Shown here piece by piece: positions 1,599-35,600 of a stretch of DNA of 64,000 nt; the first letter of the stretch is position 1, and each line of letters starts with the position of its first letter. The DNA is from Cyanophora paradoxa CCMP329 (Eukaryota; Plantae; Glaucophyta). The notes below the pieces were generated by a model. That model saw only the letters and a list, made by a program, of their open reading frames with translations. It was not told where the DNA came from and searched no databases. Made by a program: the position numbers and the translations under genes. The stretch lies in NCBI GenBank assembly GCA_004431415.1, contig QPMI01000491.1, forward strand, positions 1 through 64,000. The letters run 5' to 3'.

Positions 1599-1691
1599 AA
1601 AAGGGAGTAGCCCCAACAGTATATAAAGACGAGTTTGGCTTTAATTTCTCTGTTTTATTAGAGACATGGATATAATACGAAAGTTATTGAG

Positions 1692-1919
1692 ATGCTCAGT
1701 CTGCATGTGGTGAGCAATTGCCACAGTGGATGCTGTGACACAACAATAGAGTTTGAGATGTCAGATACTGAGGATAATGTATCTGAGGCAAGAGAGAGAA
1801 GGAGATCAACAGTTTCAGTGGAGTCAATGCCAGCAGACCCACAGAGTATACATATGAGCAACAGGAGTATCCAAGGAGAAGTTCCTCTGCCAGCAGAAAA
1901 CGTTTCTCTGGGAATATAA
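1692..1919 (+). CDS. Small hypothetical viral protein
   Basis: 75-aa ORF in a densely packed viral region; no recognisable motif. Confidence 0.3.
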   Translation: MLSLHVVSNCHSGCCDTTIEFEMSDTEDNVSEARERRRSTVSVESMPADPQSIHMSNRSIQGEVPLPAENVSLGI

Positions 1920-1996
1920 ATGGAGGACACTATTAGTTTAATCGAGTTTACAGTGATGAACCTGTTACTGAGGGTTCTATTAGACACATTCTAGCA

Positions 1997-2116
1997 ATGC
2001 AGAAACGATATAGAGAGGACCCAGCATATAGAGAGTATAAAAAGCAGCAAGCCCTGGCATCCTATTATCGCAGAAAAGCCAAAAAGAGGAGCAGAGACAA
2101 GAGGGAGACCGATTAA
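1997..2116 (+). CDS. Small basic protein (MQKRYREDPAYREYKK...), may extend upstream to 1920 through a frameshift
   Basis: Hand-translated 39-aa K/R/Y-rich ORF sharing a Y..D..YR..K pattern with ORF 5231-5485. Confidence 0.35.
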   Translation: MQKRYREDPAYREYKKQQALASYYRRKAKKRSRDKRETD

Positions 2117-2298
2117 ATATTATTTGCCTACTGAAAGTAGCAATGGACCCCAGGTCTATAAGATAATTGAGAAAAGCGGTCTCAGTATGCCACTGAGGCA
2201 GCTATAAAAATATATACAAAGGAATTGGCTTTATACTTGCAATCAAGTCACAGATAAGTTTTGTAAATATGCTTTTTTGTTGTTTTTTGTTTGCATTC

Positions 2299-2472
2299 TC
2301 AGACACTGAAACAGTAATGTGAATGTTTAACTGATCTATTTCTCTTTGGTTTAGCTGCATACATATTGTAACCTATCAATCTCTGTGACATTTCGATATA
2401 TGCCCCTATATCTCCATGCTTTATGCATTTATCTAACTCAGTCATGGTCATCTCATCAAGAGTCTTTGCCAT
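2299..2472 (-). CDS. Small hypothetical viral protein (MAKTLDEM...)
   Basis: Short ORF downstream of the primase-helicase, same strand. Confidence 0.3.
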   Translation of the reverse strand: MAKTLDEMTMTELDKCIKHGDIGAYIEMSQRLIGYNMYAAKPKRNRSVKHSHYCFSV

Positions 2473-2540
2473 TTTGTCTTCACTATACACAATCAAGTAA
2501 GCCTTAAGTATTCTTGTCAATTTTGGTCATTTTCGATAGG

Positions 2541-2639
2541 TGTGACAGGTGTGACAGGTGTGACAGGTCTATCCCATCGATTTTGAAAATCAACTTTTCA
2601 CCAGGGCTTTCCTTGGGATGGACTGTCACACTGTCACAC
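2541..2639. repeat. Inverted iteron cassette, candidate replication origin (copy 1)
   Basis: TGTGACAGG x3, ~55-bp spacer, CTGTCACA x2. Lies ~60 bp past the primase-helicase stop codon. Confidence 0.7.
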
Positions 2640-2698
2640 AAACCATTTTCAGTAAGGCTATAAAAATATATGTAAATCTCAATCATTAATCGTTTTCT

Positions 2699-5019: not shown

Positions 5020-5230
5020 TTTCAGCGATCGGGGTCCCTTTTATATATATAGAAGATTTTTCTTTAAGTAGTTTTGGGTCCCCAATCATTTTTTGTTGGA
5101 AATCGAGAAAGTATCCCTACGAAATTTATCCACATGATATATCGAGTGGTTTAGATACAAAAAGGATGAATGGGTATTTCAGCGAATAAACAGCATATCC
5201 CCAGCCTAGTAATATGCTGGGAAAAATAAT

Positions 5231-5485
5231 TTAGACATGTTTCAATTTTCTCCCTCTATTTGAGTAAGGGACATCATACAAATACTTGACAAAGCAGACT
5301 GCATTGGCTGCATACTTTCGCTGACATGAACTTGCTATTTTCATTGCTCTATAGGTATCATCGGTTTGATATAGATCTCTTAGCTGTGTGGCTATTTTTT
5401 CGTTAAACTTTTTGATTTGAGCCTTACCTTTTTCAGTTTGCTGATATCTTTTCATAGCTCTCTTCTGGGCTTCACTGAGTGGCAT
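5231..5485 (-). CDS. Small basic protein, possible DNA-binding
   Basis: 84-aa ORF MPLSEAQKRAMKRYQQTEKGK..., preceded by the promoter motif. Confidence 0.6.
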   Translation of the reverse strand: MPLSEAQKRAMKRYQQTEKGKAQIKKFNEKIATQLRDLYQTDDTYRAMKIASSCQRKYAANAVCFVKYLYDVPYSNRGRKLKHV

Positions 5486-5541
5486 TTTTCCTTTGTCTCT
5501 CTTAATATATATAGAGAATTCTTTAAATCATTTTTTGTTGC

Positions 5542-5859
5542 TCAGCCAAATGTAATTGTTTCAACATCACATGCATTGTAGTCCAGAATGTTGAACAAGG
5601 TGAACTCTGGATACTGTAATGTGTTTCTACAGAATGGGCATTTTGTATTCCCGACTATTTCCTCTTGCTGTTTCATACATCCTATACAGACTGTCTTGAA
5701 GTACTGATCACACACAAACTGATCATAGCTAGTCTCATCACATTTACATAAACTGCATAGAATTCGTTTATACTCTGAGCTTTCACATGTGTCATTTCTT
5801 TCTCTAATGTTTCTCAGGATTGCTGAAATTTCTAGCGTTCTTTGACTCTCCTGGTTCAT
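5542..5859 (-). CDS. RING-finger-like protein (putative viral E3 ligase)
   Basis: CSLC...C....CIGC...CPFCR spacing. Likely start is MNQESQ at 5859, after the promoter motif. Confidence 0.7.
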   Translation of the reverse strand: MNQESQRTLEISAILRNIRERNDTCESSEYKRILCSLCKCDETSYDQFVCDQYFKTVCIGCMKQQEEIVGNTKCPFCRNTLQYPEFTLFNILDYNACDVETITFG

Positions 5860-5982
5860 TCTTGCTATTTGGCTTCTATATATATACAATATAAAATTTC
5901 CTTTAAGTATTTTCGCGTTTGGAATATCCCCATTTAAAACCTCCCCTTTTATTAGGAACAAGTTAGGAACAAGTTAGGAACA

Positions 5983-8900
5983 ATGCCCCGAATTAGCAAC
6001 AGACTTATTAGAGAAAAGAAATGGGAACTCATGGGATTACTGGGAACACTGTATGCAGCCCATGAAATTACAGAGGCTGAATATGACCGGGAAATCGGAT
6101 TTATTTCAAGGGGCAGACCCACTTTAGCAAAATTAACCAGAAAAGCCAATAACCTCTATGACAAAGTTGAGACTCTTGATGAACTCGATCGCCTGAGGCA
6201 AATAGAACCAGAGGCAGAAGATGGCACAGCCATGAATGAATTATATCGCTGGCTCACATACAGAGCCAGAAGGGAAGTTGTGGTAGATGTGATTGAATAT
6301 TTAGATAGAATTGCAACCTCTCTACCAAAACGTTTAAGAGATAGTCTGGATCAATTCAGGGCAATCAAAGTTCGCTTGTCGTTTATCTGCAAGTTCGTAA
6401 AAGTCAGCAATCCACAGGTTTGGATATCGAAATACATTTACAGCGATTATTTTGTATTAACCAAATCGAGAAATATTCGAACTGAGCTGAATAAAGCAGC
6501 CCAAATGTGTCAGGAACAGATGAATGTTGTTGATAGCTATCGATTGGAGAGAATCGAAATGCTAAGAGTTGCTATTATGAGTTATGCCCCAACTGGTGGC
6601 TGCTATGTTAAAACACCAGAATCAATTGCAGCCAAGAGAGCCACAGTGAATATTCGAAATATTGATGATTCTTGCTTTGAAAATGCCATTTTGGCATGGA
6701 TCCATAGGAAAGATGTAAATTCCCACAAGAGAAGTGAGCTTACACAATATCGCAAATGGAAATACTCACCAACCACATACAATCCTTTGGCTCTCAATTT
6801 CGACAATATCCCATTCCCTGTTCCTTGTGATGCTGAAATCATTGATAAATTCGAATCTCAAAATGCAGGCATCAGCATAAACATATTTGGAATGGATGGA
6901 GATGTTATATATCCCCTACATCAATCCAGCAACCCAGGCAGAAAGCAAAAGATTAATCTAATGCTCATTCATGATGATGAAGGGAATGGTCACTATATTA
7001 CTATCATGTCCCTTTCAAGACTTCTCAGAGTTGCCCTTGATAAAACCAAGGATCAAAAGTTACACTACTGTGATACATGCTTATCTCGATTCAGGTCTGA
7101 GGCTAAACTCACTGCTCATGTGGACTCAAACAGATGCATTGATTGGAGACTCTCAAAGGGAATCACCCCTAAGCCTGACACCACAATAGAGTTTGGACTG
7201 AAAAACCTCAGGAAAACTGTCTGGCTTCCTGTTGTGGTTTACTGCAAGATTGAACATAGAAGCATCCCCATTGATGCATCGAAATCCAAGAGGGAAGTCT
7301 CAGCAGTCAACATTAGAATAGTCACTGGGGCAGATGTTCAGGAGTTTCGATTTGAGGGTCAGGATCCAATGGGAGGTCTGTTTGAATGCTTGGAGTCCAA
7401 AGCAAGAGAGCTAATCGATTTCCTGTTCACCAATATTCCCATGAATGAACTCACAGATGAGCAAAAGGCTATTTACAGAGCTACCAAACACTGTTACCTT
7501 TGCAGTGAGAGGTTCACCAAGGAAAACTTCAAATGCAGGGATCATGATCACCACACAGGTAATTACATTGCACCTGCATGCAGAAACTGCAATCTCCATA
7601 GGAGAATCTCAAAGCAAACAAAAGTAGCAGTGGTTGTTGACCAAATGGATGACTGTGGGACATTCATTTTCAGAAAAATAGCAGGCATGGGTGATAAAAA
7701 GCGAATCGAAATCCTTTCGAAAAACTTTGATCAATACCTTTCATTGCAATGGGGTCTTTACAAGTTCATTGATGCAAGTAATTTTATGGACTTTGGGGCT
7801 GCTGATGTAGATGAGTTAATGAGCAAATTCCAGGCTTTCAGAAGGCTTTCACACTCAGTATATGGATTGGACCCAGTTCATTATGTATCTGCACCTGGGT
7901 TATCTTGGGATGCTATGCTTAGGACCACCAAGGCAAAAATAGAGCTTATAAGTGATGTAGAGCAATACGAATTTGTTGAGAGGGGAATCAGGGGTGGCTT
8001 TGCAACAATGCCTTGTAGGTATGCTGAGGCTGATGGTGAGAACTCCCATATAATGCTGTTTGATGCTAACAACTTGTATGGCTACTGTTTGAGTCAGCCA
8101 ATCCCAGTTGGTGATTTTAGATGGGAGACCGAATTCAACCCACAAGATAACAGATCCAGTTTCCTGGAAGTTGATCTGGATTACCCAATTAGGCTATATC
8201 TAGACCACAGTGATTTCCCCCTAATTATTAACAAGAAAATAGTAGAATATGCAGAATTATCACAATATCAAAAGAGCCTATTAGATCTCTCAGGAGAAGA
8301 GCTTGATAAGACCCTAAGCTAACTGCAACCTTTGGTTCTGTGACCAACTATGTGATTTCTGAGCCTCTTCTACAGTATCTGTTGGACAAAGGGGTGAAAC
8401 TAAAGAAGGTTCACAGGGTCCTATCATTTACTGTGGCTCCTGTAATGAAACCCTACATTGAGCTGAATACTGAGATGAGAAGGAAAGCAGTGAATAAATT
8501 CGAGGCTGATTTCTATAAACTCATGAATAACTCAATCTATGGGAAATGCATTGAATCTTGCAGAGGTAGATCTGTGGTTAAGATTGCAAACAGTGAGAAA
8601 CTGTTTATGAAATATGCAGCCTCCCCATTGGTGAAATCAACAAGTCCCATAAACGAAAAAGCAGTTGCCTTTGAGTTTTACACAAAGCATGTGAAGCTAG
8701 ATAAGCCAGTTGCTATTGGGGCTTATGTTCTGGATGCAGCCAAACTGCATAACTACAAGTTCTTCTATGATACTGTAAGGTCCCAATGGACAAAAGCAAA
8801 GTTACTATTCCATGATACTGACTCCTTCTGTCTATATATTGAATCTAAGACCCTCCAAGAGGACCTGGGGAATATCTCTTATGCATTGGACCTAGGGGGG

Positions 8901-9227
8901 TCTAACAGAATGACCCCAGGTAAATACAAAAATGAGATGCCTGGCTCTGCTATATTGGAGTATGTGGGTCTGAGAGCTAAAGTTTACAGTTTCAGAACTG
9001 CTGAGATTGAGAGGAGTAAGCTCTCTGGGACTTCAACTGAGGAACTCCAATTTAATGATTTTAAACAGTGTTTATTTGCAGGTATCAGCAAGACTGTGAC
9101 TGCAAAGCAGAAAAGAAGGGCAGATCACACAATAATAGACACTGTGAGTAGAAGGGTTGCCCTAAACTGCTTTGATGCAAAGAGATACATCTTACCAGAT
9201 GGTATTAATTCTGTTCCTTTTAATTAA
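5983..9227 (+). CDS. polB: Protein-primed family B DNA polymerase with N-terminal TP/vOTU-like region, C2H2-like finger and EndoVII-like insert (one frameshift near 8313)
   Basis: Motif A FDANNLYG, motif B KLMNNSIYGK, motif C HDTDS, VGLRAKVYS. CYLC..DHDHHTG..CRNCNL insert. Adding one C to the run at 8312-8314 restores KTPKLTATFGSVTNYV. Confidence 0.95.
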
Positions 9228-9230
9228 GAG

Positions 9231-10615
9231 ATGCCAGCAACTGGAAGAATAGTTAGGAGAACCACTGAGCAACTACAAGGTAACCTACTGCCTATCACAG
9301 TTCCCAAGGAGGAAAAGGGAGAATCTCGAATTGTAAAAAAGTCAGAGATGAAAGAGCTTGTCCCAGTAGAGATCCCAGTTGCTATTGCAGTGAAAGAAAC
9401 CAGCAAGATTGCCAAGAGATTCTATGATGTGAGAACTGGTTACAAAGGGCTTCAAGCTATGAGGGCTGAGTTACCTGATGAATCCTATAAGCAGTTGCAA
9501 GAGTTCTATAAAAAACAAGAAGTTGTTCAGATCAATGCACCTGCTATATCTAGGAAGAGAGATCCATGGTCCCAATTAGGCAACCCCTTGATACCTATGT
9601 GATTGATTTGCTCTTTTTCCCAGCTTATAAGAAACAAAACAATGGCTATGATACCTTTATGACTGCAATGGAATCTACACTGAGAACTGGGTATATCATA
9701 CCTATAAGGGATAAATCAGCTCTCACTACATTAGCTGCATTTAAACAGCTTGAAATGAGAGTGGCAAGACCCATAGTAAAAGTTCAATCAGATGCTGGGA
9801 GTGAATTCCAAAATCGAATATTCCAGGAGTATCTATCTAGTAAATTCATAGAACACCAAGTGAGTGGAACTGCAGACCATAGAAGCCAAGGTCGAATTGA
9901 AGCCTTTAACAAGCAGATTAAGAGACTGATCACAAACTACTGCATAGCCAATAATACAGCTAGATTCTTTGATGTGTTAGGTGATATTGAGTATAATTAC
10001 AATAATACAGTTCACTCAGCTACTAAGATGAAGCCAGGCGAAACTACAGAGGAGCATTATAGGTATATAGTGGGATTAGAAGATGAAAGATTCAAGAAAT
10101 CAATAGCTTACCTTGATACCATGCAGCCTGGCATGTTTGTTAGAGTGAAAGTTGAGAAAAATCCCTTTGCTAAACAGGGTAACAATTGGTCTAGGATGGT
10201 TTACACTGTTGATAGTAGGGAAGGCTTTAAGTTTAAGCTAAGGAGTCCCACTGGTGAGATCATAGATAACAGGTTTGCTTTCCATGAGCTGTTGCCTGTG
10301 AATGCAGTTGAATATCTAGAAACCCCTACAGTGGATGCCTTGGAGCAAGCTAAAGAGGAAGCTAGGGTTGATGCTGCTATAAGGAGAGAAGGCATAGAAG
10401 CTGCTAATGAAGTCCCAGATAAGCCTTTGATAGAGGCTAGAAAGGAGAAGGCTGGGAAAGTTAACAGGGAACTCAAAAAGCTCACTATAGCAGGGACACA
10501 GAAACTTTCTGAGGTTAATAGCCAGAGATGGTATAATGACTTTCAGACTACTAAGGAGTCATATACAGCCCCTAAACCTCAGAGAACACTAAGAGAAAGG
10601 ACCAAAACTAGCTAG
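9231..10615 (+). CDS. Retroviral-type (rve) DDE integrase (one frameshift near 9560-9570)
   Basis: YVIDLL / VQSDAGSEF / SQGRIEAFNK triad, YNNTVHSATKMKP, and an SH3-like VRVK..F.K...NWS..VYTV region. No chromodomain seen. Confidence 0.93.
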
Positions 10616-12043
10616 TTTGCTAGGCAAAAACTCGTTTTTTCCAAATATATGTATGACTGATATACATATATGCACATGATATACACATAGTCTTGTAGAT
10701 CTTATCAAGCGCTTCACAGCGATATGCAGAACGTTGCGTTTTGATGATCTGGTGATGAGATATAACAGTTTGAAGATGCAAAAGTCACTTGCCATAGTAG
10801 ACTTGGTGAAACACTAGCCCAGGAGTCGACTTGGAAAGCCGTTTTTGGCTCAGAGAATACAGCGCTTGATTTCTGACTCAAAACTACGCGGTTCAAATCC
10901 GCTCGGGAACCTTTACTTCGTTCGCCGTGAAACTTGAAAAGTAAAAAAAAAACGCGGTTTTTTCTAGATTAATGCTGTACCCGTCTAGAAAATCAATATT
11001 CACGTTTGCTACGATATCTCAACACCAACTTATCAAATCGATGCGCTTAAAACGTCATAAAATCGAGCATTTCAAGGCGGTCACAGCGCTTATGAGCCAT
11101 ATCGGAATTTCACTAACTGTAACTCCAAATCGCGATGAAACCGATTTTGAATTTCGATTTTAAATTCGATTAAAATCCATTAAACGTGAGTTTTTAATAT
11201 AGATCACTAGGAAGTTATCAAATCGATGCACTGACGGTCGAATATAATCCCATATATCATACATAACAATAACTTGCAATCACATATACGAATCTCAATG
11301 TGTATAGATCGCTATTACGATTAAAGCGAGTTTTGAAATTCAAAATTAATTCGATTAAATTCGATTATAACTCAAAAATCGCGATTTATAACCATATACT
11401 TATCGTTTCGATCAACTTATGATATCGAATATTCAACTATATTATATTGCTTCGATAACTGTGATCCCATCTATGATCCCATCAATCTAACACTGCATTT
11501 AGTAAGCATCTCCCCTTGATTCCCCCTATTATATTATATTTATATTTAAGTGGACTCAAGGTTGACTCATATTAATCGTAAAAGTAGTAAAAGTATATGG
11601 ATTTTGTTACGAATTCAATGCAAGGGTTGACTAAGTGGGTTGAGTTGACTCAAATTTCACAGGAAATAACAATGAATCAGAGTATAAATGCATTTTTTGA
11701 ATCAACTACACCAACTAACACTGAGAAAGTAGAAGATATCATATAGTATTACCATATATGGTTTGTCAGGCACTATAATATAGTTGTCAGGCACTTATAT
11801 AGTATGTCAGGCATTGTCAGGCACCTTTTTAGAAAACTTTTCTATAATTCAAATTTCATTGTTGATCCAAACAATGACTTTGCCAAAATAAAATACTTTG
11901 TCAAAATCGATGGATTTAATGCCTGACAAATAAATGCTGCCTGAAAGATTTTAAATCACATTCCTAAGATCACATTTGAATCAACTACACCAACTAACAC
12001 TGAGATTTTAACAATATATGAGGTCCTTACTGAATATGGTATG

Positions 12044-20394: not shown

Positions 20395-20461
20395 GGGGAC
20401 TCGGGACTCGGGAGTCGCGATCGGGACTCGGGACTCGGGAGTCGGGACTCGGGAGTCGGGA
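20395..20461. repeat. (CGGGACT/CGGGAGT)n heptamer array containing the left candidate TSD (20443-20461)
   Basis: The same 19-mer CGGGACTCGGGAGTCGGGA recurs at 39138-39156, on the other side of the LINE. Confidence 0.6.
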
Positions 20462-20686
20462 TTTTTTTTGCAAAAGTGGACGTCGCATTGATACACCACG
20501 GCACATGTATCAATGTTCTACGTGACGTGCCCTTCCGACCGGTCAACTATCTAGCCGAAGGTGCTAGCTAGGTGCCGGCCATGGGTCGCTCAATATGGGA
20601 GGTTCGCCTGAGTGGGGGAGCCATGGTTTTCGGTGATAGCCGTAACCAGACCCGCGCGCCCACCCCTTGATCAACTCCTCCATCCC

Positions 20687-23600
20687 TCATGAGCCCTGGA
20701 AGTGAAATGTCTCGCAGTCCGCCGCCCTCCCTTGCCGCCGCTCCGCCACGCTTCCTCCTCCCCACTCCGCCTCCTCCCTCCTCCTCACCTGCGCCCCAGG
20801 ACCCCGATTAATCGGTGTCCCGTTTTGTCGAGGTGAAGAAGGTGGTAGGAGGAAGATATGAGGAAGGAGAGGGAGTGGGCGGAGGCAGCAGCTTGGGGCG
20901 GGCAGCGGATGCGGGGCAAGGCAGGGGGAGGTGCCGGGACAGCAGTGTGGAGTGAGCGTGGGCATTGGCAGGCGGCGCAGAGAGCTGGGAGTGCGGAGAC
21001 GAGGCGGGCCGCGAGGGGTCGGGAGGGTCGACCGGGTGAGAGGGGGGGCCGAGGCCAGGGGGGTGGCCGAAGCCATGGGGTTGGCCGAAGCCAGGGGGGT
21101 GGCCGAAGCCGATGGGGTGGCCGAAGCCAAAGGGGGGGCCGAGGCCATTGGGGGGGCCGAAGCCATAGGGGTGGCCGGAGCCAGCGGGGGGTCTGGCACT
21201 TGAGGGCCGGTTGGGGTCGGGGGGGAGACCGTAGGGGGCTGAGGGGCAGCGTCTTGCGAGGTCCCGAGCGGGGGGGTCAGCTGGAGCGAGGGGGGGGAGG
21301 GGGAGTTGGCTGCTTGCAGCGTCGTAAGTGGTTTGTACACTCCGGGTGCAAAGAGGGACGTGATTGTGGGTTGCCCCGTGGGTATCGGCACCGTTCGCGC
21401 TTTTTTGGTCATGCGCCTGGGAGTCTTGCGGCCGGTTGCCTTTCTTTTTGCCGTAGGTACGGGCCGGGCGGGTGTAGAGGCGGGAGGGGAGGGGTCGCGG
21501 GGCGCGGGCATTTTGGTGCCGGGGCGGAGGGGTATCGGCTGTCCGTTTACGTGAGGCAGGCGACGGGCGTGTTCGTTTTGGGGGAGGGGCCAGGGGGGCC
21601 CCGGAGCGGGGCGTTTGGAAGGTTGGGTAGTGTTCGTAGGACCCGCGGGCGAAGCGGGCAGGATGCCAGTGTCGGAGTTCTCGTGTGACTGTCGTGCTGG
21701 GGGTACCGCAGGTGGGAGGCAGGGCAGGAGGTGATCTCAGGGCGGGCGGGGCATTTTCCCCGTCTGGCGTCGGAGTGGGCCTGGAGGGCAGATGCAGAGG
21801 CGAACCGAGTGCCGCAGGTGCAGGAGAAGTCAGACGTCCCGGCGGCGGGTCCTGCATCGGGCAGCTGGGAGGAGGGGGGGGCCTGGGGTGAGGGGGCGAC
21901 GGGGAGTCGTGCAATTGCTTGGCGGAAGTTTTCCAAGAGAATCCATGGTTGGCCTTCCGAGCCCAATTCGCAGCAGAAGTCGGTGATGGAGATGGTATCA
22001 TGGAGGGAGGGGGCGGGGGGAGGGCGGGGGGGAGGGGGGGGACTGGGCGGCTGTATTAGAGGCGAGCGGGAGGGTTTGGAGTCTGCATGTTTGCGGTACC
22101 GACGTTTGGTTCTGTCATTGATGCCGTGTCGGAGCTCCCAGGCGTGGTTGCGGGCGCAGCGGTCTCTCCAGATTGCACGGAGGTGTTGGTCGAGGAGCAG
22201 CGCTAGTCTTTTTGGATTGACGATGAGGTGGTCTTGTTGATACCCAGAGCTGTGCAGAGGGCAGGCAGTCCTGCCGGTGTACCGAGGCGTAGGAGAGCGA
22301 GGGCGGGAAGGGAAGCATGTCGGCCAGGGCCGGGCTGAGTTTTTTCCATAGTGTATCGGCGAGGCCGGGGGGCGGAAGAGAGCCGGATTTGCGGTGGGGG
22401 AGAGAAGGGCGGAATGGAGGGAGAGGCGGGGTCAGGAGAAACGAGGCGGAGGAAGGGGAAGAGTTGAAAGATGGTATCGTCGTGTCCTAGTGGTTTGGGC
22501 GAGTGGCGGAGAACCGGGTACGGAGGAAGGTCACGAGTGCGTCCTGGAAAGCTTGGAGAAGGAGGCGAGCGGCGGGCAAGTAAATATGTGGACGAAGTCT
22601 TCGGGGGGTGGGTTGTGGGGTCGGGCGGTCTGGGGTCTGCGGCCGCCGGTGGGGAAGAGGGCGAGGGGAGCCCGGGGGTGCATGTGGCAGGGGGCGGGGA
22701 GGGGGAGGGTGGGGAAGCAGCATCTTCGGGGATGGGGGCAGGGGTGGGAGGGAGGTGACAGAAGGGGCAGTGGCGGTGCCGTCGGGGAAGAGAGGGCCGT
22801 AGAGGTCGGGGTCGTGGAGAAGGCGGATGGTGAGGGAGGGAAGGCTTCCAAGCATGCATTGGAATCTGACTTTGCGGAGGTGGTCGCCTGTGGGGGTGCG
22901 GCGGTCCGGTGGCTTGTCGGACACTAGGGAGAGGGCTGGAGCGAGGGTAACATGGGGGTTGCTGAGGACGGCCCCCGCGTTGCGAAGCTGGCGCCAGTCG
23001 AGGTATTGGGAGAGGGAGGCTTCGGCTAGGAAGTGAGAGCGGGGGTCCCCCTCGACGCGGTACGCATGGAGTCTGCCTCGGTAGGGCTCGGCCCCGGGGA
23101 CTGGGCCGTGGGATAGTGGGGGCGGGAGGCCAACACGGATGAGGAAGCATTTGAAACTGTGGGGAATGAAAAGAAGGGCGGAGAGGGGGGCGTCGGGGGC
23201 TGTTTTAGCAAGCTTGTCAACGGCGTCATTGTGGCGGTTGTCAGGGGTGTAGGCTGGGTTCGGGATACGATTCTTAGCCGGGGTGCGGGCCGCCTCTTTC
23301 TGTGCGGCTGTTTTGGATGTTTTGGCGGACCGTGGTTGCGGCAGGGTGGCTTCACGGTGAGCGGCTTCAGTTAGGATGGACGCCGCTTCGAGTGGGGTAA
23401 CGTGGGACGGCCGGAAGAGACGGCGCGCTGTGGCGGAGGCTTCGTTGCGAGCCAGGTCGGCGAGCTGAGAGGCGAGTTCTTGGGCGTAGCGGGCGCCGGG
23501 AGGGAGGGGGTGGCGGGCCCTTCGGGGCGGGGCGGGGAGACTCAAGCACAGTTGGGGAGCGCGGGAGGGCTGGATGGTTGGGGAGGATGGTGGGGAGTCG

Positions 23601-26600
23601 AGGGTAGGGAGGGTGCCGCCGGTGGAGACTGGGGGCGGCGCGGCGGATGGTACGCCCGGGGAAGGTCGGCGGGGGCCGGAGGGCCGGGAGGGTTGGGCTG
23701 CAGCATAGGGGGTCAAGGGTGACGGACCCGTAGCAGAGGCTGAGGGCAATATATTCACGGTATCTGCGGAGCGCTGCAGCGTCGGCCTGAATGTAGGCTG
23801 GGGGGCGGGGCAGGTCCGACGGGGTAAGTGCTGAGGAGCGACTGAGTAGGTCAGCTGTGAGGAGGAGGAGTGGACCGCAGGCCGTGCTGTTTGGGGGCTG
23901 GAGAACGGAAAGGGATGTCTCCGGGCGTAGATAGGTCCATCTGCAGAAGGGAGTGGGGGGGAGGGGGGGTCCAGAGTCGCGCTGACTCCAAGTGGCCGCC
24001 AAGTCTTGTGCAAAGGAGACAAGGTGATCAGGGACGTCGAGGGAGCCATTGTAGAAGTAGAATGAGCGCGTCTGTGGAAATAGAGCAAGTAGGTGCCAGT
24101 GTCCCGGAGGTCTGCTGGAGGAAGGGGTCAGCGAGGGGGCTGGTGGGGTCTGTTGAATTGGGCAATAGGTGAGGATGGGGACGAGAACGAGGCGGGCATC
24201 GAGGAGTCGTCCGTGGGGGATGTATCGGTGTAGGGGGAGGAGGGCAGAACCCCGAGAGTCGAAGTGGGAGGCTGCGCTAGCAGGGTAGGAGCTGGACGAT
24301 AGGAAGTGAGCAGGGTGGGTGAGGCCAGGGCGGCTTCCCGGGAAGAGAGCAGGTCAAAAAAGGCTTCCACGAGGGGAGGCTGAGGGGGCATTCGGACGGA
24401 GGTGTATAAGGTCGCCTCGTCGAATGAGTGAGTAACAGTGAGGGTCGGCTCGGGGGGCGGGTGGGAGGGGGGCTTCGACGCGAGGGTTTGCTCCGCGCAA
24501 TAATCATTGTCTGCGAAGCGGAAGGCATTCCCCAGCCAGCTTTTCTCCGCCAGCGTCAGCGGGCGAGGGAGGGGAATTCAGTCGGGTGGACGGGGGTTCG
24601 GCCTGGGGAGGCATGCGCAACGGGGTGGGCCGCGGGCGACGGAGGGCGTGGGATTGAGGAGTGGGCGTGGGAGGGGTGGAGGGATGCGGGGAGGGGGAGG
24701 GGAGTTGGGGGATCGGGGGGTGTAAGGGGCAAGGGGGAAGGGGGGGACGGAAGGGAGGGGGGTGGGGTCTCGTTTGCGTCGGACCCGGCGGCGGGCTTTT
24801 GCTGCCGTGTGCTGGGAGGGGCGGGAGCTGGTGCGTGGGGTCGTGCGCTGCCGTTTTGTTGTGAAAGCCGGGCCGTTGGCCTGGATTGTCCCCAGGAGGA
24901 CCTCAGGGTCCCGGAGGAGGAGAGCGGCCGCCCAGCGTTCCCGGTAGATGGGGGCGTGGAAGGGGATGGGGCGCGCGGCCCCGTCCTTTGCCGTACAGGT
25001 GGACTTCCTCGCCGCGGCCAATGAACTCAGCGGCGGTCATGACGAAGAGAGCGTCTTCACCCGTGTGGACGTGTTTCCAAGCTTGCGTGGGGAAGGTGCT
25101 GGTGTCGTATTTCCAGGCCGAGCGTGGAGAGGGGTCGCCAGGGCGGAGGGTCGCCGTCCACCATTTGAGGACCCAGTCTTTAAGAAGGACCGTGACGTCG
25201 GAGGCGGGTTTGCGGGTGACGTCCAGGATGCGGATTTCGCGGAGGCGGGCTGAGATGATTGCTAGTCGCCAGGGTCGGGACCCAGAGGGTGGTAGGGGAA
25301 GGAGAATATAGTCGTACTCCGTTGGGGAGAAGGGGTGCGGGACGTAGGATCGGTCCGTTAGCGGCCGGCCTGCGCGGGTCTTGAGCGAGAGGGTGGAAGG
25401 GGCTGTGCCCATGAGGATTGAGGTTGCGTGGGAGGACGAAAGAAAGAGGCACTTGGGGGTGGTGGGGGCGTGCAGCCGGAAGGAGACTTGCCGGTTCTGA
25501 AGAAGTCTGAAGAAAGCGTCAATGGGTTCTGCAGGTATGGGTTGTTCGAGGAGAAGGGTGTGGCCAGGTGGGCCCCAGACCGGGGTTGGGGTCGATGAGG
25601 GAGAGAGGAGCCGCTCTAAGGGCGGCCAGGCGAGATTTTATGCCATCGAGGAGGGGAAGTACTCGGCGGTCATACCGGGGGCCGTCAGGATCGATGGCAG
25701 CCGAGTAGGGAATGGCTCGGCGGCCATATCGTTCGAACAGTATGGGGAGGGCGCCGGTTTGGTCGCGGAGTGGGAAAGTGGGTGGGGGGCCGGGCGGGGC
25801 GGGGGTGGGGTGGCAGTGCGGGCAGGATAGGGCAGGTCCCCGTGCCCATTGTTCTGCGATCAGGGAGGAAATGGGGAGTCCCCACATGCCAGGATCACAG
25901 CGGTGGTACGCGATCGGAGGGGCACCAGCCTCAGCTTGGGGGGTGGGGGCAAGCGTGAGATCTTCGTCCCAATACCAGGCGGGGAGAGGCGTGTCGCGGT
26001 CGGCGGGGACAGCCGGTTTGCAGAGGGAAGTGTGATAGAAAGTCCAGCTGGGGCCGGGGGCCCGAGGGTGGGCGAGGTGGTGGTCGAGGGCGAGCTTCCT
26101 TGTAGGCCCGGGGTCGGGATATTCGGCGTCGGGGGGGTCCTCGGGGAGTGGTTGAAGGAAGATTGGGTTGGGAGGGGAGTAACATTGGAAGGAGATGTTG
26201 CGAGTGATGTTTTTGCGTCCGAAGGCTTCTAGGAAGGCTGAGTAGGCGCGGAGGATGTCGCAGTCCGAAGTGATGGTGAGATGTTCGTCGGAGGGGAGGA
26301 GAGCGTGGTTTTTGGGGATGCGGATGCAGCGGTTCCAGATGAGAGTTTCCTCCGCTACGAATGCTCGTTCGAGTCTAGCCGACGCGAGGGGGACGAGGTC
26401 TAGGATCAGGTGGGTGTTGGTAGTATCAGAGGCGTCGACATATTCGGCTAGGTCCGCCTGGCAGCGGAGGAAGTTGTAGTCGGCCGGGCTATCTGCTAGA
26501 ATATATGTGCGAAGATGCCGGCGAGGCGGAAAGAGGGACGAGAATAGCGACGGGGGGAGGGGCGGGGAGGAGTCGTCCGAAAAAAGGAGTCGAGCGTCGG

Positions 26601-29600
26601 GGATGTCCATTCCACCAATATAATGATAAGGGGCCGAGGCAGGGAACGTCTGCGGGGCAGTAGGTGGGGGGGCAGCTGGTCCGCTGAGGGGGACGCGGGG
26701 TCGGCGGGGGGAGGAGGGGACCGGGCGTCGGGTTGCCTGTGGGGTTGTAGCCGTTGCGGTTGGCCGCGGAATGGTCTTTGGTTGGTGAGAGGGGACCCAT
26801 TGGAGCGTGATTTGAAAGTTTGGGTCTTGAGCGATACGAATGGCGTATTGCGTGCGAGCGTTGAGGAGAAGGGCCCCGTCTTCTCGGCGGAGCAGGGTGC
26901 GGAAGTTGATAGGGTGGGAGAAAGAGGAGGGGTCTCGGAAGGCGAAGGCTGTCAGGGCCCGGATAGTGTTTTGGCTGTCCGTGATAATTTTCCCACCCGT
27001 GGGCCCGAAGTACGTGAATGCTGCGGAGATCGCGCCTGCTAGCTCTCCCAGGTTCACGTTGTGTTGGACACCGGGGAGGCGGTGGGCGAACTCGATGTGG
27101 TTAGGTAAGTCGGGATTATTTTCGAGGGGTGCAAGGCCGGCGTAGGTGGTTCGGACTGATGCGGAGCCCTGTTTTTGTGTGCTGGCGTCCGTGTATATGA
27201 CCCGGGGAGTAGGGTCGGGGGGAGGAGGTGGGGAGTTTAGGGCACGGAGCGTGGGGCAGAGCTCAGCGAAGAGGGCTCGGGAGGTGGCGAAGAGGAAGTC
27301 GAGCCCGGCCGAGGAATCATAGAATTCGCGGTCGGCTTGTGAGGGAGGGTCCTCGGGCGTGGGCGTCGCTCGAGGGCGACATTGGTGGCCTGGGCTTCCG
27401 CGCGGAAGGAGTCCCACCAGTCAGTTTCCCGAAGCCAGAGGTCGATGAAACCAATATGTGTGATTTCGCGGGGGAGGTTGGGAGGGGGGAGTTCGGGGTC
27501 ATATTGGGCGGAGGGGTTTCTGAGGAGGGGTCGAGGCGGCTTTTTTAGCTGCTCTTGTGGGTTGAGCGCGGGTGGGCTGTTGTCCTCTGAAGCGGGAGCA
27601 TGGGAAGGCGGGGCGGAGTCGGGCAGCTGCCGGGAGCGGGTGGGAGCCGGCCTATTTAGGTTGGAGAGGCTCGGAGACCAGCCCTTCGATTCGCACGAGG
27701 AGCCCGCTGGAATTCGGCGAACGTGGGATGCGTACTCGACCCAGCGGCAGGCCGTTGTGGAGAGGCCCAGCTCGCGATGGAGCTGTTCGGAGCCGCAAAA
27801 TTTTGGGTGGGGCAGAATTGGAATTCGAGTCTGCGTTCACGCCAGGCAGGGTCGAGTTCAAGAGCCGATAGGCCGGGGTCGCGTGTGGAAAGTCCATCGT
27901 ATGGGGTGAGGCAGTAATGGACGAGTTCCACCCCATAATTATACTCTGAGTCTCGGGGCAGTTAGGGTCCGCGTCGGGGTCCTCGGGAGCCAGTTCGTCC
28001 GGGTTGTCGTCCGGGAGAGGGGTTTCCCGACGACGCGACCAACTAGGCCTTGGGACGTCCAGACAAAGTCACCGATTTTGAGTCCCGCAAGGACGGCGTC
28101 GGCTTGGAGAGAGCGACGGATGTCTGGGATAGAGGGCGGCGGGGCATGGGGTATCGGGGGAGGAAGGGGGACTGGATGGAAGGGCGGGGAAGAGAGAGTT
28201 CTTCGCGGACCGCGTCCCACCAGGAGGGGGCATGTTTGTAGTATGCCGGGACACGACCATGACTCCAGAGGAGGGACCAATCAGCTAGTGAGCCGTCGGA
28301 GGACGTAATGTCACGGATGGTGAGGAGGCCGCAGCGATAGAGGCGCTGGCCGGCTTGTTGGAGGGTGAGGGGCGTCAATTGTGATGATATAATGTATTCT
28401 CGTCGAAGGTGGGACCGTCGGGAGGGGAGGCCGTGCGTCCAGGAATCGCATGTTGTGAGGATGTGGTGGGAGGTGGAAGTCAAGTCTGCCGTGATGGCGA
28501 GCGTAATATTTTTCTGTAGTGTAAGGGGCCCCGAAGGAAGGTTCGGGTATTCATGTGGGAGGAGGGGGAGCCCGTACCGGGCCTGGGTGTCGAGGACGCG
28601 TTGTCGGTATATTTGGCCGTAGAGTGATGATGTGTGGGAGGCGAGTTCCTGGCGGAGGCGCTCGTCGACGCACTGCTGTTGGCGTTGGATGACTGCTATT
28701 GAGGGAAGGCGATAGATGGAGGAGAATGCAGCCGTGGAGACGGACTGGGCCAGGTTGGCAGTGTGTTTGGCCGCGGTGAGCCAAACAGCGTCGAGGGACT
28801 GGCATTGGGATGGCATTAGGGTCATGATGCGGAGGGGGTATGACAGTTTAGGGAAGAGAACCCGGTGTAATATCACTTGGAATTCGTGAACGGTAATCTT
28901 TTTCGTGGCTAGGATCGAGATTGCAGATTGGAGCTGGGATTTGAGTAGGCGGACTTGGTGGGTCCAAGACAGGTTCGCAGTAAACTGGACGCCGAGGACG
29001 CGGAAGGGCGTTGTGGGGGAGAGGATGTGGCCAACCTCAGCTCTGGAATCGCCAACTCCGACATAGTATTTGCTCTTGACCGGCTCTTCGGATCGGGGGG
29101 TTTCCAGTGAAAGATTTCCGTCTTTTTGGCGTTCAAGTTCATGCCATGGATATGTAGAAATTCGGACAGCCAGTCAAGCATATGTTGGAGGCCCTGAGCC
29201 GAGCTGGCAAGCATGGTGGTATCGTCGGCGTATGCAAGCACAGAGACTTTGGGGCAGGGACCGGCGGGGAAGTAGAGGGTTCGCCAGGGCATGGTGGGCG
29301 GGGGAACGGGGCGGGTCGGATCAGATCGGTGCGGCCCAAGCTGGTAGCCGAAATTGGACTGAGTCGCTCGTTCTTCAATGGCGGTGAGAGCGGCGTCGAA
29401 GAAAATGCGCCAGTGGAGGGGGGCTTCGATGCCACCTTGGGGAGGCCACAGGGACTTGAAAATATTCAGTGCGGCCGTGGGGGGTAAGGATGCACGCCGT
29501 GCGGTGTTGAGCTGCTTTTTTGTGGAGGGCTATATATCGTTTCCCTTCAGGATGGAGGTGGAGTTGGATACGGTTAAGGCTGAGCTCTTGGCTATGCCAG

Positions 29601-32600
29601 GAGACACTGTCGTAGGCGCTGGCGATATCCCCAGGCCGCCAAAGATTGGCTTTTTGAACTGGTGCGCGTCCTCGAGGGAGGATCGGAGGGCGTAGAGGAC
29701 AGGGTCGGTAGATTCGCGGCGACAGAAACCATAATTACGGCCGCGTAAAATGTTATGTGTATCAATGCGGTCTTCCATGCGGTGGGTCAGGAGGCCCGTG
29801 ACCAGCTTCCAGGTGACTTCTTGAAGGGTGATGGGGCGGAGATCGGCGAGATCTGCTGAATTATCTCGTTTCGGGATAGCGTAGACTTGGCCGCGAAGTG
29901 CGTGGTCGGGCACGTGGCCGAGAAGAGTGGATTGAACTAGAGCTCGGATGGCGTCGCGCGAGGTGGTCCAGTGGGCCGCGGACTCGAAGCTGTTTATCTC
30001 GTCTGTAGAGTGTGAGGCGGTTAGGGTCTGGCGTTCCGTCTTGGAGAGGCGGAGGGGGGACCAGAGCATTTTAAGCATTCCGTTCGTGAGGCCGGAGGGC
30101 CGCCAGCGCCATTGGACAGGGACGAGATGAGGCGATCGAGTTCGGGGTCCTCTGGCATGGCCATTAGCCCGTCCCAGACGGCGGGGCGAAGTGGGAAAGG
30201 GGTCGGTACTGGCGTTTCCAAAATCTGCCCAACCAGGCGCCGTTTTCAATGACCTCGAATTTCGTAGCTATGGCATCCAGGTTTGGGGCGGCCTTGCGGA
30301 GTCGCCAGAAATTTTTGAAGTGATCCAGATGTGCGCGTTTAATTTCAGTGGATCAGTGAGCACTTCGGGGAGTCCCGCTGCCGTGCGGGTAAGATACAGG
30401 CGAGGGGCGGATCGGAAGCGGGAGAGAAGGAGTTGAATAGCCCGACCCATGCTTCGACAGTGGGACAGGAGGTGGCGGCGGGTGTCAATATTGCGAGCGA
30501 TGTCGGCTTCAGTGTATGCGTGGCGATGGTTGTCCAGGGCGGCCCGCGCCTGTAAATGCCACATGCTGAGTTGAGCATGGTACTCGGCGATTTCAGATCC
30601 TGTAATGATACCCTTCTCGAACTCAGGGTAATTAGGAGGGTCGGGGAAAGCGAGGAGGGAGGGGCAAAATGCCAGCGTGGTGTCCGAGCCCGCGGATTTT
30701 CGGATGTCTGTCACGTCTTTGGGAAGGTCCCGGAAAACAGCCCGAATAGTTTCGTCAGGCGGGTGGTCTGTGGAACCTTGGCGGGACCAGTCGTTTAGGG
30801 CCTGTCCGACGCGGCCAACAAGTTGTTCGTCGTCAGCGTCCAGCGCAGACAAGTGGTTGAATTTAGCCATATCGCCCTGGGCGGCTACTCGGTGTTGGAG
30901 GACTTTTGCAGTAGAGAATTCTTTAGCGTGAGCGACGGACTTGATACTCTGGGCGATTGCGCAGAGGAGGGAGCGGTGGGATTTCGTGGCGCGGCGGGCA
31001 TAGTCGGGGCTGTTTTCGGGAGTGAGAAGGAGCTGGATATACCGCTGACCGTGTTTATTGAGAAAGGCTTCGACAGCGAGCTTGAAAGCAAGCCGGATTG
31101 GTGCAGGCTGGGCGGCATAGTTGAAGAGAGGGGGGAGAGGCTGGGGTCGGGGCTGGCGGGGGGCGGTCGGGGGGCAGAGAGCACTCCTTCGGTTGTGAAA
31201 GTCGCCAATACTGGGAAGTGATCGGCTGAGAGCAGGGGGAGGGTCGTCCAGGGACAGCCAGTGTACGAGTGCCCAGCGATCGGGCCGCTAGGGTGGGGAG
31301 GCGAGGGCATAGTCGAGGCGGGCGGCGTTCAGGAGAGGGCGGTGGCCTTGCTCGTCGATGAAGTCTGCGTGGTGTGAGATGTGCGTGAAATCGCCGGGGT
31401 ACCGGTGTCGATGAGGCCCCAGGTCGCTCGGAGGAGGGTCCAGATTTCCGCGTAGGAGTTCGGGGGTGTAGTTTCGGTGCGCCGGTTGCCCCCGGTGATC
31501 CGGTCGTTGCACGGAGAGTGTGTGCTATTCATATCGCCGAGTACCAGGAGATGTGTCTGCCAGTCAGGCTCGTGGAGGTCAGGTGCGACCTTCGCGGTCA
31601 GGTATTCGGTGAGGTCGTGGAGCTCTTTTTGCAAATTGTCGTGCCCGCAGTCCGGTATATAGAGTGAGAGGACAATGAGGCGCTCGCGCGTGCGCGGGAA
31701 GTCAAACCGAGCGCCGGCTACCCGGCCGTCAAACGCGTAATCCGCCTGGCGGTGCGCTGCATAGCTTGCTGAGATCCACAGCGCGGAGCCGGCGGTGCCA
31801 GGACGGGCCGCGGAGGGAGGGAGTAGACAAGGTAGCTAGATTTATGGCGGCGGACTGCCGTCTTAATCAGGTGATCGCGGATATTGGGCGGAAAGGGCTT
31901 CGAGGGGGGCGGTCAACGGGGACCATGTCGACCTCTTGAAGAGCAACGAAGTGACAGTCCCAATCACGGCGGCCATAGTCGATTGCGCTGATAAATTTAG
32001 TTGCAACATTGTTGCCGCTCGTCTTCCCCTCCAAGCGGCGAATATTCCACGTGAGGGCGCGGAGGTTCAGCTTCGCATTAGCCGCGTCCGGGGGATGTGC
32101 TAGGACGGGGATCTGGAGCACATCACGATGGCCGCGAGCGTCAATACGGTCAGCGGTGTAGAGGGAGGGAGGGTATAGCGTTAGAAGGGACGAGGCCGCC
32201 GTGACTAGTGTCGGGGAGGAGAGGGCAGCGGCGGCGGTAGCGACTGCAGCGGCCGTAGCTGTGCTGGGCTCAATGTCCGCAAGAGCGACAGGGACAAGGG
32301 CAGCGAGGAGAGCACAAAGGAGGAGGCGCGCGGGGAGAGGGGCCGGGCGGCTGAAGGTCCGTTGGACTTGTGGGGCGCGGCGCGCAGGCCAGCCCAGGAG
32401 TTCGAGACCGGCGTCATGCGGCGCAGCGTCCGTGGCGCCGGCGTCAGCGGGGCCAGCGCTGGCGTGCACGTAGGCACTGGCGCGGATGCTAACTGCGAGG
32501 TACGCGGCCGTGCGCGTGGCTGGTACGCGTCCGGATCCGTACACGGGGCTCGTACGACAGCTCTCGGCGTCATGCAGCGCGGCGTCCGCGGCCGAGCTCG

Positions 32601-35600
32601 AGGCGCCGGCGTTGGCGGAGCTAGCACTAGCGTGGGCGCCGGAGCTAGCTGCGAAACCTGCAGTGGTAGTATCGGTGCTATAGCTAGGCGCCGGCACGCG
32701 ACCGTACGCAGGGTTGGTGGTACTTGCTATAGTGCAGCTATTAAAGCGCCAATCGCGGATTGCGGAGGTATTGGGCCGCTTCGAATCATTGCCCGACTCA
32801 CCGGTCGCATGAATAGAAAAAACTGTTCGCGTTGGAGTTTTTTGACGGCACGCGGCGGGGGTACCGGTAGGCGCAGTTTCGTCCGGGGCCCTGAGACGTT
32901 CCGAACGGAAGGGGAGGCTCCACCGGCCACTGCAGTAGGCGGCGGCGCTGATGTGGCTTCCGTGCTCCAGTCCAGCGATCATGTTCTGGAGCATGCCGTA
33001 GCGCGGTCTAGCGAACGTGGTCCAGGAGGTGCTCCAGATGTAGACACGGCGACTGAGCTGCGAAAGTACTTGCGCGGCCTGCTGGATGCCGAGGCGAACA
33101 GCGCGGCGTGGAGCGGCAGCGACAGTAGCATCAGTACGGGGCCCGGGATTGACCTCTCGCTGCGGGCCTCCGGGAAACTTCTGCACATCGAGGTTTGCTC
33201 TACGGGTCGGACAGTCGGCTCGGGCACTGCGCTGAGCAGCCGGGCGGCCGAGGCCGACAGCGTCCTGCAGGTCGAACGGAGGCGAGGCGCAAGGCGCGCT
33301 GGGGCCCGGTGGCGGCTTCGCTTCAGGTCCAGGTCCGTCAGCACGGGCGCGGCGCCGAGCAGCGGGGCGGCCGACAGCGTCTTGCAGGTCGCGCGGCGCG
33401 GGCGGAGCTCGAGGCGAGACAGGCGGCGCGCTGGGGCCCGTCGGCGGCTTCACTTCAGGTCCAGGTCCGTCAGCAAAGGCGCGGCGCCGGGCAGCAGGGC
33501 GGCCGACAGCGTCCTGCAGGTCGCGCGGCGCGGGCGGAGGCGAGGCGCGGGGCGCGCTGGGGCTCGGCGGCGGATTCTCGTCAGGTCCAGGTCCGTCAGC
33601 GCGGGCGCGGCGCCGGGCAGCGGGGCGGCCGACAGCGTCCTGCAGGTCTCGCGGCGCGGGCGGAGGCGAGGCGTTGGGCGCGCTGGGGCTCGGCGGCGGC
33701 TTCACTTGAGGTCCAGGTCCGGCAGCGCGGGCGCGGCGCCGGGCAGCTGGGCGGCCGACAGTGTTCTGCAGGTCGCGCGGTGCGGGCGGAGGCGAGACGG
33801 GCGGCATGCTGGGGCTCGGCGGCGGCTTCACTGCAGGTCCAGGTCCGTCAGCGCGGGCGCGGCGCCGGGCAGCGGGGCGGCCGACAGCGTCCTGCAGGTC
33901 ACGCGGCGCGGGCGGAGGCGGGACGGGCGGCGCGCTGGGGCCCGTCGGCGGCTTCACTTGAGGTCCAGGTCCGTCAGCACGGGCGCGACGCCGGGCAGCG
34001 GGGCGGCCGACAGCGTCCTGCAGGTCGCGTGGCGCGGGCGGAGGCGAGGCGCGGAGCGCGCTGGGGCCCGTCGGCGGCTTCTCTTCCGGTCCGGGTCCGG
34101 CAGCACGGGCGCGGTGCCGGGCAGCGGGGCGGCCGACAGCGTCCTGCAGGTCGCTCGGCGCGGGCGGAGGCGGGACCACCGGCGCGCTGGGGCCCGTCGG
34201 CGGCTTCTCTTCCGGTCCGAGTCCGGCAGCGCGGGCGCGGCGCCGGGCAGTGGGGTGGCCGACAGCGTCCTGCAGGTCTTGCGGCGCGGGCGGAGGTGAA
34301 ACAGGCGGCGAGCTGGGGCTCGGCGGCGGCTTCACTTCAGGTCCAGGTCCGTTAGCAAAGGCGCGGCGCCGGGCAGCTGGGCGGCCGACAGCGTCCTGCA
34401 GGTCGCGCGGGGCGGGCGGAGGCGAGACAGACGGCGCGCTGGGGCCTATCGGCGGCTTCTCGTCAGGTCCAGGTCCGTCAGTCCGGGCGCGGCGCCGGGC
34501 AGCAAGGCGGCCGACAGCGTCCTGCAGGTCTCGCGACGCGGGCGGAGGCGAGGCGCGGAGCGCGCTGGGGCTCGGCGGCGGCTTCACTTGGGGTCCAGGT
34601 CCGGCAGCGCGGGCGCGGTGCCGGGCAGCGGGGCGGCCGACAGTGTTCTGCAGGTCGCGCGGTGCGGGCGGAGGCGAGACGGGCGGCACGCAGGGGCTCG
34701 GTGGCGGCTTCACTTGAGGTCCAGGTCCGTCAGCGCAAGCGTGGCGCCGGGCAGCGGGGCGGCCGACAGCGTCCTGCAGGTCACGCGGCGCGGGCGGAGG
34801 CGGGACGGGCGGCGCGCTGGGGTCCGTCGGCGGCTTCACTTGAGGTCCAGGTCCGTCAGCGCGGGCGCGGCGCCGGGCAGCTGGGCGGCCGACAGCGTCC
34901 TGCAGGTCGCGTGGCGCGGGCGGAGGCGAGGCGCGGAGCGCGTTGGGGCCCGTCGGCGGCTTCTCTTCCGGGCCGGGTCCGGCAGCACGGGCGCGGTGCC
35001 GGGCAGCGGGGCGGCCGACAGCGTCCTGCAGGTCGCTCGGCGCGGGCGGAGGCGGGACCACCGGCGCGCTGGGGCCCGTCGGCGGCTTCTCTTCCGGTCC
35101 GGGTCCGGCAGCGCGGGCGCGGCGCCGGGCAGTGGGGCGGCCGACAGCGTCCTGCAGGTCGCTCGGCGCGGGCGGAGGTGAGACAGGCGGCGAGCTGGGG
35201 CTCGGCGGCGGCTTCACTTCAGGTCCAGGTCTGTCAGCGCGGGCGCGGCGCCGGGCAGCTGGGCGGCCGACAGCGTCCTGCAGGTCGCGTGGCGCGGGCG
35301 GAGGCGAGGCGCGGAGCGCGCTGGGGCCCGTCGGCGGCTTCTCGTCAGGTCCAGGTCCGTCAGTCCGGGCGCGGCGCCGGGCAGCAGGGCGGCCGACAGC
35401 GTCCTGCAGGCCTCGCGGCGCGGGCGGAGGCGAGGCGTTGGGCGCGCTGGGGCTCGGCGGCGGCGCGACAGGGGGCGAGGCGCGCGGGTTGCTGGGGCCC
35501 GGCGGCACATGTGGCAGGCGAGGCGTGATGCAGCTGGGGCCCCGGTGGGTGGTTAGACCCTGTCCGTCGATCCGACTGGTAGAAGTTGTAGTGGGCATGT

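Follow-up and report, generated by a model that had tools for sequence, protein, structure and literature searches.

The window analyzed here, a stretch of 64,000 nucleotides from Cyanophora paradoxa CCMP329 (GenBank assembly GCA_004431415.1, contig QPMI01000491.1, positions 1 to 64,000), contains on its minus strand a long interspersed nuclear element (LINE) whose RNase H domain appears to be interrupted by a large cassette with two protease-like domains of the C48 (Ulp1-like) type. We consider it probable, at roughly 0.68, that this copy, decayed or mis-assembled, belongs to a Cyanophora paradoxa family of LINEs with an apurinic/apyrimidinic endonuclease (APE-type), that the cassette occupies the RNase H loop between the WVxSH and N..D.LAK motifs, that the RNase H still folds around it, and that the live C48 domain is an isopeptidase. 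Judged by its motifs, the cassette is composed of about 1,170-1,185 residues, with a Cys/His domain, a dead C48 domain and a live-looking C48 domain, flanked by long Pro-rich linkers. Comparison with an intact relative establishes, at the level of sequence, the motifs and their order, their conservation in that relative, the kinship with C48 and the retention of the catalytic residues.

The relative was found in an exhaustive HMMER search with the 632-amino acid open reading frame (ORF) at 27417-25522 of the window, which returned two proteins. One, P0001, is a Cyanophora paradoxa gene model in EukProt that is 97% identical to the window ORF; the other, P0002, has 3,720 amino acids and is encoded by an uninterrupted ORF on an 11.9-kb ENA metagenome contig (locus L001), where the coding frame is open for 3,762 codons and the other five frames for at most 211. 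Pfam places Exo_endo_phos at residues 13-292 and RVT_1 at 733-1037 of P0002, and a tblastn comparison of P0002 with the window is collinear from 32088 to 20806, in alternating frames, with 28-49% identity (mostly 35-40%). Both elements belong to the LINEs by their content: PF03372 and PF00078 are present in P0002, and the window has an RVT_1 match (28912-29292, minus strand), the start of an Exo_endo_phos endonuclease (about 32088, at the end of a 1,756-amino acid ORF at 37137-31867) and a (GAGTCCC)n tail. The parts of the body follow each other in the order endonuclease, reverse transcriptase, amino-terminal part of the RNase H (N-part), cassette, last helix, zinc knuckle and C-terminal tail.

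20806..32088, minus strand: APE-type LINE body collinear with P0002 (tblastn chain and Pfam RVT_1), broken by many frame changes
20396..20461, minus strand: 3' tail, where an A-rich stretch is followed by a (GAGTCCC)n microsatellite (9.6 copies with period 7 by Tandem Repeats Finder)

In P0002 the complete layout is read in one frame. The RNase H motifs LWHDAST, AGEVA, VLDS and WVASHQPKTIP lead into a Pro-rich linker, which is followed by a domain that we call X, a dead C48 domain (C48-A), a C48 domain with GHW, IYDG and QQQRNTCG (C48-B), a helical segment, the stretch NLYNDQVDKLAK at residues 2926-2937 (NDQVDKLAK) and a split zinc knuckle. Because an intact relative has the same layout, this layout evolved as part of the element, and the 3,720-codon ORF of P0002 bears out the preliminary description of this DNA on the split: the cassette is a conserved, in-frame part of the LINE ORF between the WV(P/A)SH strand and the N..D.LAK helix. 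The one-frame architecture also rules out two possibilities which that description had named as checks: a canonical helix hidden right after WVPSH, where P0002 has only a Pro-rich linker following WVASHQ, and an insert that is a separate nested element, since the cassette is in frame in P0002 and, in the window, has neither direct nor inverted terminal repeats at its borders. We therefore give almost no credence to a reading in which the 3.5 kb are a separate element or captured host gene nested in one copy, or chance motifs in decayed GC-rich sequence. The several frameshifts and stops of the window copy, and the failure of its pieces to match C48 in Pfam, speak for such a reading, but it is already contradicted by the sequence evidence in hand: besides the missing repeats, the domain order is identical in one uninterrupted ORF of a 35-40% identical relative, domain X and the zinc knuckle have counterparts in other Cyanophora copies, and the C48-B core aligns with P0002 (E = 1e-16). 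These other copies are the EukProt models tig00020553_g10726.t1 and tig00020563_g11348.t1 (P0001 and P0003), which comprise domain X and zinc knuckle and by their sequences are fragments of LINE copies rather than host genes. Two scans of JGI metagenomes, one with the alignment of RNase H and domain X and the other with the last-helix alignment, found no relative.

The N-part of the RNase H contains the first four catalytic residues and ends in a linker:

26767..27240, minus strand: RNase H N-part, strand 1 to strand 5 (Pfam PF00075; 43% identity to P0002:1612-1765)
27201-27178, minus strand: VIYTDAST, with a catalytic Asp
27054-27031, minus strand: NLGELAGA, with the catalytic Glu
26988-26971, minus strand: IITDSQ, with a catalytic Asp
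26805-26767, minus strand: LQWVPSHQPKTIP, containing WVPSH with the catalytic His
26629..26766, minus strand: Pro-rich linker directly after WVPSHQPKTIP (from the translation)

As had been claimed, the D/E/D motifs and WVPSH lie at 27201-26785 and the N..D.LAK helix about 1,185 codons later. On the 632-amino acid ORF the Pfam RNase_H profile covers residues 73-212 at profile positions 5-123 of 141, so that the match stops just before the last helix; the same search with the N-part of P0002 gave no RNase_H match. No N..D.LA-type helix is present in the Pro-rich linker after WVPSHQPKTIP, either in the translation of the window or in the alignment with P0002. The candidate for the missing helix lies beyond the cassette:

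23195..23263, minus strand: proposed last RNase H helix (alpha-E), PNPAYTPDNRHNDAVDKLAKTAP, with the pattern PNPAYT..N..NDAVDKLAK, the top-ranked downstream segment
23230-23204, minus strand: NDAVDKLAK

In the RNase H-bearing LINEs of the APE type, the last helix stands within a few residues of the His loop. Here, the distance from the catalytic His to the helix Asn is about 1,185 codons in the window and 1,172 residues in P0002. The Asn and Asp of the helix, aligned with NERCDELAR, correspond to N130 and D134 of E. coli RNase HI. We appended each downstream 30-residue segment to the N-part and scored the product with a home-made RNase HI profile built from six bacterial enzymes (E. coli RNase HI and five plasmid-borne homologues), the two halves being joined in silico for scoring only. 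In the window, the NDAVDKLAK segment at 23245 was the best of 4,638 stop-free segments in three frames, with 15.2 bits against 2.2 bits for the N-part alone and a mean of 2.3 (standard deviation 0.9) over the segments; in P0002, the segment from 2929 was the best of 1,925, with 3.1 bits against a mean of -1.8 (standard deviation 0.39). When the joined halves of both elements are aligned by MAFFT with the six bacterial enzymes, the residues D, E, D, H, N and D fall in the catalytic columns, and an hhalign comparison with the same six, of low probability, is confined to strand 5 and the helix and extends over NERCDELAR of E. coli. The block around the last helix is 53% identical to P0002 and is the best-conserved part of the whole ORF; sequence and profile searches of the PDB with it gave chance matches only. 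A complex prediction for the N-part and helix segment of P0002 scored 0.00 and speaks neither way. We regard it as likely but not proven that NDxVDKLAK is the last helix of the RNase H, i.e. that the RNase H is split, and we infer the docking of the two halves from their motifs.

Between the two RNase H parts lie the three domains of the cassette:

25522..26628, minus strand: domain X, without recognizable family (aligned to P0002:1810-2160 and to P0001, 97% identical)
25983-25957, minus strand: PAWYWDEDL motif of domain X, invariant
25911-25807, minus strand: Cys/His cluster of domain X, AYHRC ... C..CHP, kept in both elements (P0002 about 2075-2110)
25038..25517, minus strand: C48-A, Ulp1-like with dead catalytic positions (43% identity to P0002:2165-2365), in a frame that differs from that of domain X
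24341..24373, minus strand: N-terminal helix of C48-B, LVEAFFDLLSS (BLASTP to P0002, VVEVFFDLLSA..., E = 5e-5)
23844..24197, minus strand: catalytic core of C48-B (35% identity to P0002, E = 1e-16)
24107-24078, minus strand: GHW of C48-B
24062-24036, minus strand: FYNGS of C48-B, where P0002 has Asp at the position of the Asn
within 23903-23844, minus strand: TACG of C48-B

This succession of an unknown domain, a degenerate C48-like domain and a C48-like domain had been recognized before, and we find the same order in P0002. The Cys/His cluster of domain X looks like a metal site. Domain X has no match in Pfam or NCBIfam, shows no real match to C48-B in hhalign, and yielded no homologues when its P0002 version was used as query, in a search whose candidate list was crowded by Pro-rich words. 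In C48-A, RPW stands for His-Trp and EDAL for Asp-Cys-Gly, and the window and P0002 alike have Arg or Pro instead of His and Ala instead of Cys. As these dead positions are common to both elements, C48-A would be an old, retained pseudo-protease. C48-B of P0002, by comparison, has the complete His-Asp-Gln-Cys set in order (GHW, IYDG, QQQRNTCG), and PF02902 is the sole Pfam match of P0002:2530-2760 (E = 0.0021, 18.4 bits), covering profile positions 87-193 of 217, which represent the catalytic core. In an Atlas feature search, PF02902 clusters made up 26 of the 30 neighbors of the P0002 C48-A (score 0.94) and 28 of the 30 neighbors of its C48-B (score 0.95), and hhalign detects a weak in-register match between the dead and the live domain (E = 0.022). 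The C48 profile called for in the preliminary description was thus obtained below threshold in P0002 and not at all in the window, whose cassette pieces have no C48 match in Pfam; the C48-A of P0002 likewise has no Pfam match, the NCBIfam search gave none, and a homologue search with the C48-B frame of the window found nothing, its candidates being crowded by Pro-rich words. Weak profile matches together with language-model evidence support a C48-like nature of both domains. By block, the identity between window and P0002 is 43% for the RNase H N-part, 43% for C48-A, 35-41% for C48-B and 53% for the last-helix block; the linkers are poorly conserved.

The state of the window copy can be followed through its reading frames, which we name by the coordinate of the first codon base, modulo 3. 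On the minus strand, the RNase H N-part and domain X are in mod0 and the dead C48 is in mod2; the first helix of the second C48 is in mod1 and its core in mod2, which places a frameshift inside the C48-B domain; the last RNase H helix is in mod1, and the halves of the zinc knuckle are in mod2 and mod0. Along this path the frame switches from mod0 to mod2 near 25520, to mod1 near 24960, to mod2 near 24300 and to mod1 near 23380. At least four frameshifts separate the pieces, so the earlier claim that they are in frame does not hold for the window, and stop codons also lie on the path. Pieces in different frames, interrupted by stops, indicate that the window copy is decayed or has assembly indels.

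A number of observations weigh against our interpretation. As it reads, the window copy cannot make the protein: its frames are broken, the Asp of C48-B has become Asn and the Gln is displaced. Of the four C48-like residues announced previously (His, Asn, Gln and Cys), three are present, His and Cys being kept and Asn replacing Asp, and the Gln lies one residue off the oxyanion Gln of P0002. The PF02902 score of the P0002 C48-B is below the cut-off of 20.7, sequence and profile searches of the PDB with C48-B gave chance matches only, and AlphaFold on the single C48-B sequence reached a pLDDT (predicted local distance difference test) of 38, which lends no structural support. For the RNase H, the Pfam score of the window N-part (E = 1.3e-4, 22.6 bits) is under the cut-off of 25.8, PDB sequence and profile searches with the N-part gave chance matches only, and AlphaFold on a two-sequence alignment of the N-part reached a pLDDT of 32, again without structural support. 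The reference behind the RNase HI profile is small. Furthermore, a close runner-up helix occurs 48-85 residues upstream of the proposed one, with 14.2 against 15.2 bits in the window (at 23497) and 2.3 against 3.1 bits in P0002, and since the proposed helix adjoins the well-conserved downstream block, it might belong to that block.

Part of this evidence would fit an RNase H that is truncated and inactive instead of split, with the N..D.LAK helix being part of the downstream block and the cassette a set of extra C-terminal domains. The helix is contiguous with the 53%-identical block, its profile evidence is weak and has a near runner-up, the RNase H score is under the Pfam cut-off, and no confident fold was obtained (N-part pLDDT 32). 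We nevertheless find a truncated RNase H rather improbable, because the N-part keeps its D, E, D and H across about 60% divergence, which is unexpected for a dead remnant, and because Asn and Asp occur at RNase HI spacing in both elements and in the top-ranked segment of both. The Asp of the runner-up helix differs between the window element and P0002; the runner-up also lies beyond the cassette, and hence the case for a split does not hinge on which of the two helices is chosen.

If the RNase H is split as we propose, it would fold with the cassette looped out on the Pro-rich linkers, and would then clear the RNA template after reverse transcription. As has been proposed for the Ulp1 domains of other transposons, the live C48 may be a SUMO or ubiquitin-like isopeptidase that acts in trans at the integration complex, on proteins of the host or of the element itself, and the dead copy could serve as a binding or scaffold domain. 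With the same architecture, the live C48 might act in cis, cutting a giant polyprotein into working pieces; the cassette might thereby be released from the RNase H loop, or the endonuclease and reverse transcriptase be parted from the C-terminal regions. Clan CE proteases of adenoviruses and poxviruses do process polyproteins. The ORF is very long (3,720 amino acids in P0002 and longer in the window, where the 1,756-amino acid ORF runs into the endonuclease), a role in processing has been considered for retroelements that carry proteases, and the dead-plus-live tandem could be a substrate-holding pair. Action in cis seems to us unlikely, but among the functional alternatives it is the foremost. 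Gly-Gly pairs conserved between P0002 and the window occur only inside the reverse transcriptase and RNase H motifs and none is found at the cassette borders, a weak argument against canonical clan CE processing sites; also, no SUMO is seen in the ORF, and Ulp1/SENP enzymes normally need folded SUMO for recognition. We think it quite improbable that the cassette is a built-in switch, in which the live C48 cuts the linkers, or the dead copy holds the live C48 on a SUMO-modified host factor, and the RNase H is not activated or released until target-primed reverse transcription has reached the right step. If true, such a switch would constitute a protease-gated nuclease made by inserting one domain inside another. 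The functions suggested in the preliminary description, de-SUMOylation of silencing factors and an RNase H gated by cleavage, are speculation.

Downstream of the last helix, the ORF continues into a conserved block and the zinc knuckle:

22573..23194, minus strand: conserved C-terminal block (AYRVEGDPR and others) and zinc knuckle (alignments with P0002)
22772-22755, minus strand: zinc knuckle part HCPFCH
22590-22573, minus strand: zinc knuckle part HIFTCP

The zinc knuckle (C..C ... H....C), too, is interrupted: in both elements about 45-60 Pro-rich residues lie within it (P0002 3083-3142), which makes it the second small domain of this ORF with an insertion in a loop. In the window, its halves are separated by about 55 Pro-rich codons and each half is in another frame; HCPFCH is in frame in P0003, the second Cyanophora copy. 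At the very end of the element, the final bases of the 3' untranslated region (GTGTATYAATGC ... TGCAAA) are alike in the window (20396-20520) and in L001 (11800-11870), which hints at a conserved 3' end recognized by the reverse transcriptase. At the other end, at 33198-35472 within the 1,756-amino acid ORF, a unit of about 126 nucleotides is repeated in tandem some 18 times; the copies are 82-91% alike, and each encodes a 42-residue Pro/Arg-rich repeat. As these repeats are inside the ORF that runs into the endonuclease, the LINE would have a very long, repetitive N-terminal region. Around the element, the composition of the window shifts sharply, from 36-41% G+C at 1-12000 to 58-78% G+C at 14000-64000, and the latter part includes a block of 73-78% G+C (50000-58000) whose negative GC skew is opposite to the skew across the LINE. 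A search of phage DNA gave no match.

A three-domain module in the active-site loop of a small nuclease, kept over deep divergence, would be an extreme natural case of one domain inserted into another, and it would extend the list of transposons with SUMO/ubiquitin-type proteases to the APE-type LINEs of a glaucophyte alga. Should the protease prove active, these elements may be a tractable system in which to ask why such enzymes were recruited by so many classes of mobile elements, with evasion of SUMO-dependent silencing, control over repair where the element inserts and self-processing among the possible reasons. There is also a warning for annotation, in that single-ORF elements of 13-19 kb get split into many false gene models, P0001 and P0003 being examples. 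Our literature searches turned up no account of an RNase H interrupted by a module of this kind, nor of these Cyanophora elements.

The preliminary description knew of no LINE with this architecture; as far as the Ulp1 domain is concerned, LINEs that carry one have been described. NeSL-1 and Utopia-1_TSP, non-long terminal repeat retrotransposons of nematodes, have an N-terminal Ulp1-like protease (PMC4640811). Like them, the Cyanophora element is a LINE with a single ORF that contains an Ulp1-like (C48) cysteine protease besides the reverse transcriptase (PMC4640811). In those elements the endonuclease is restriction-like and the protease is single and N-terminal, and NeSL lacks an RNase H (PMC4640811); unlike NeSL and Utopia, the Cyanophora element is APE-type and carries a dead-plus-live protease tandem, which lies inside the RNase H. 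We considered membership in the NeSL/Utopia clade and rejected it, as the Cyanophora element has an N-terminal Exo_endo_phos endonuclease and an internal protease that follows the reverse transcriptase. Outside the LINEs, an Ulp1 domain (pfam02902) is fused to a transposon protein in Ginger1 and Mutator-like DNA transposons, where a role in transposition or repair has been proposed for it, at steps that depend on SUMO or ubiquitin (PMC2836005). These are, however, cut-and-paste DNA transposons in which the protease is C-terminal on the transposase and not nested in the fold of another enzyme.

Closer in setting are the Dualen/RandI LINEs of Chlamydomonas, which combine APE, reverse transcriptase, RNase H and a Josephin-like protease (PMC9977147, PMC4640811). 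The Cyanophora element resembles them as an algal LINE with APE, reverse transcriptase, RNase H and an accessory cysteine protease of a deubiquitinase-like family, but the Dualen protease is Josephin-related and not C48, Dualen also has a restriction-like endonuclease, and a split RNase H is not described for it. An RNase H is common in APE-type LINEs, including the I group, plant L1 and Tad1 (PMC4640811), with which the Cyanophora element shares the order endonuclease, reverse transcriptase, RNase H and the D-E-D-H-D residues; unlike in these, about 1,170-1,185 residues separate its His loop from the last helix. Since Ulp1-like proteases are already known in LINEs, the Cyanophora layout is a variation on a known habit.

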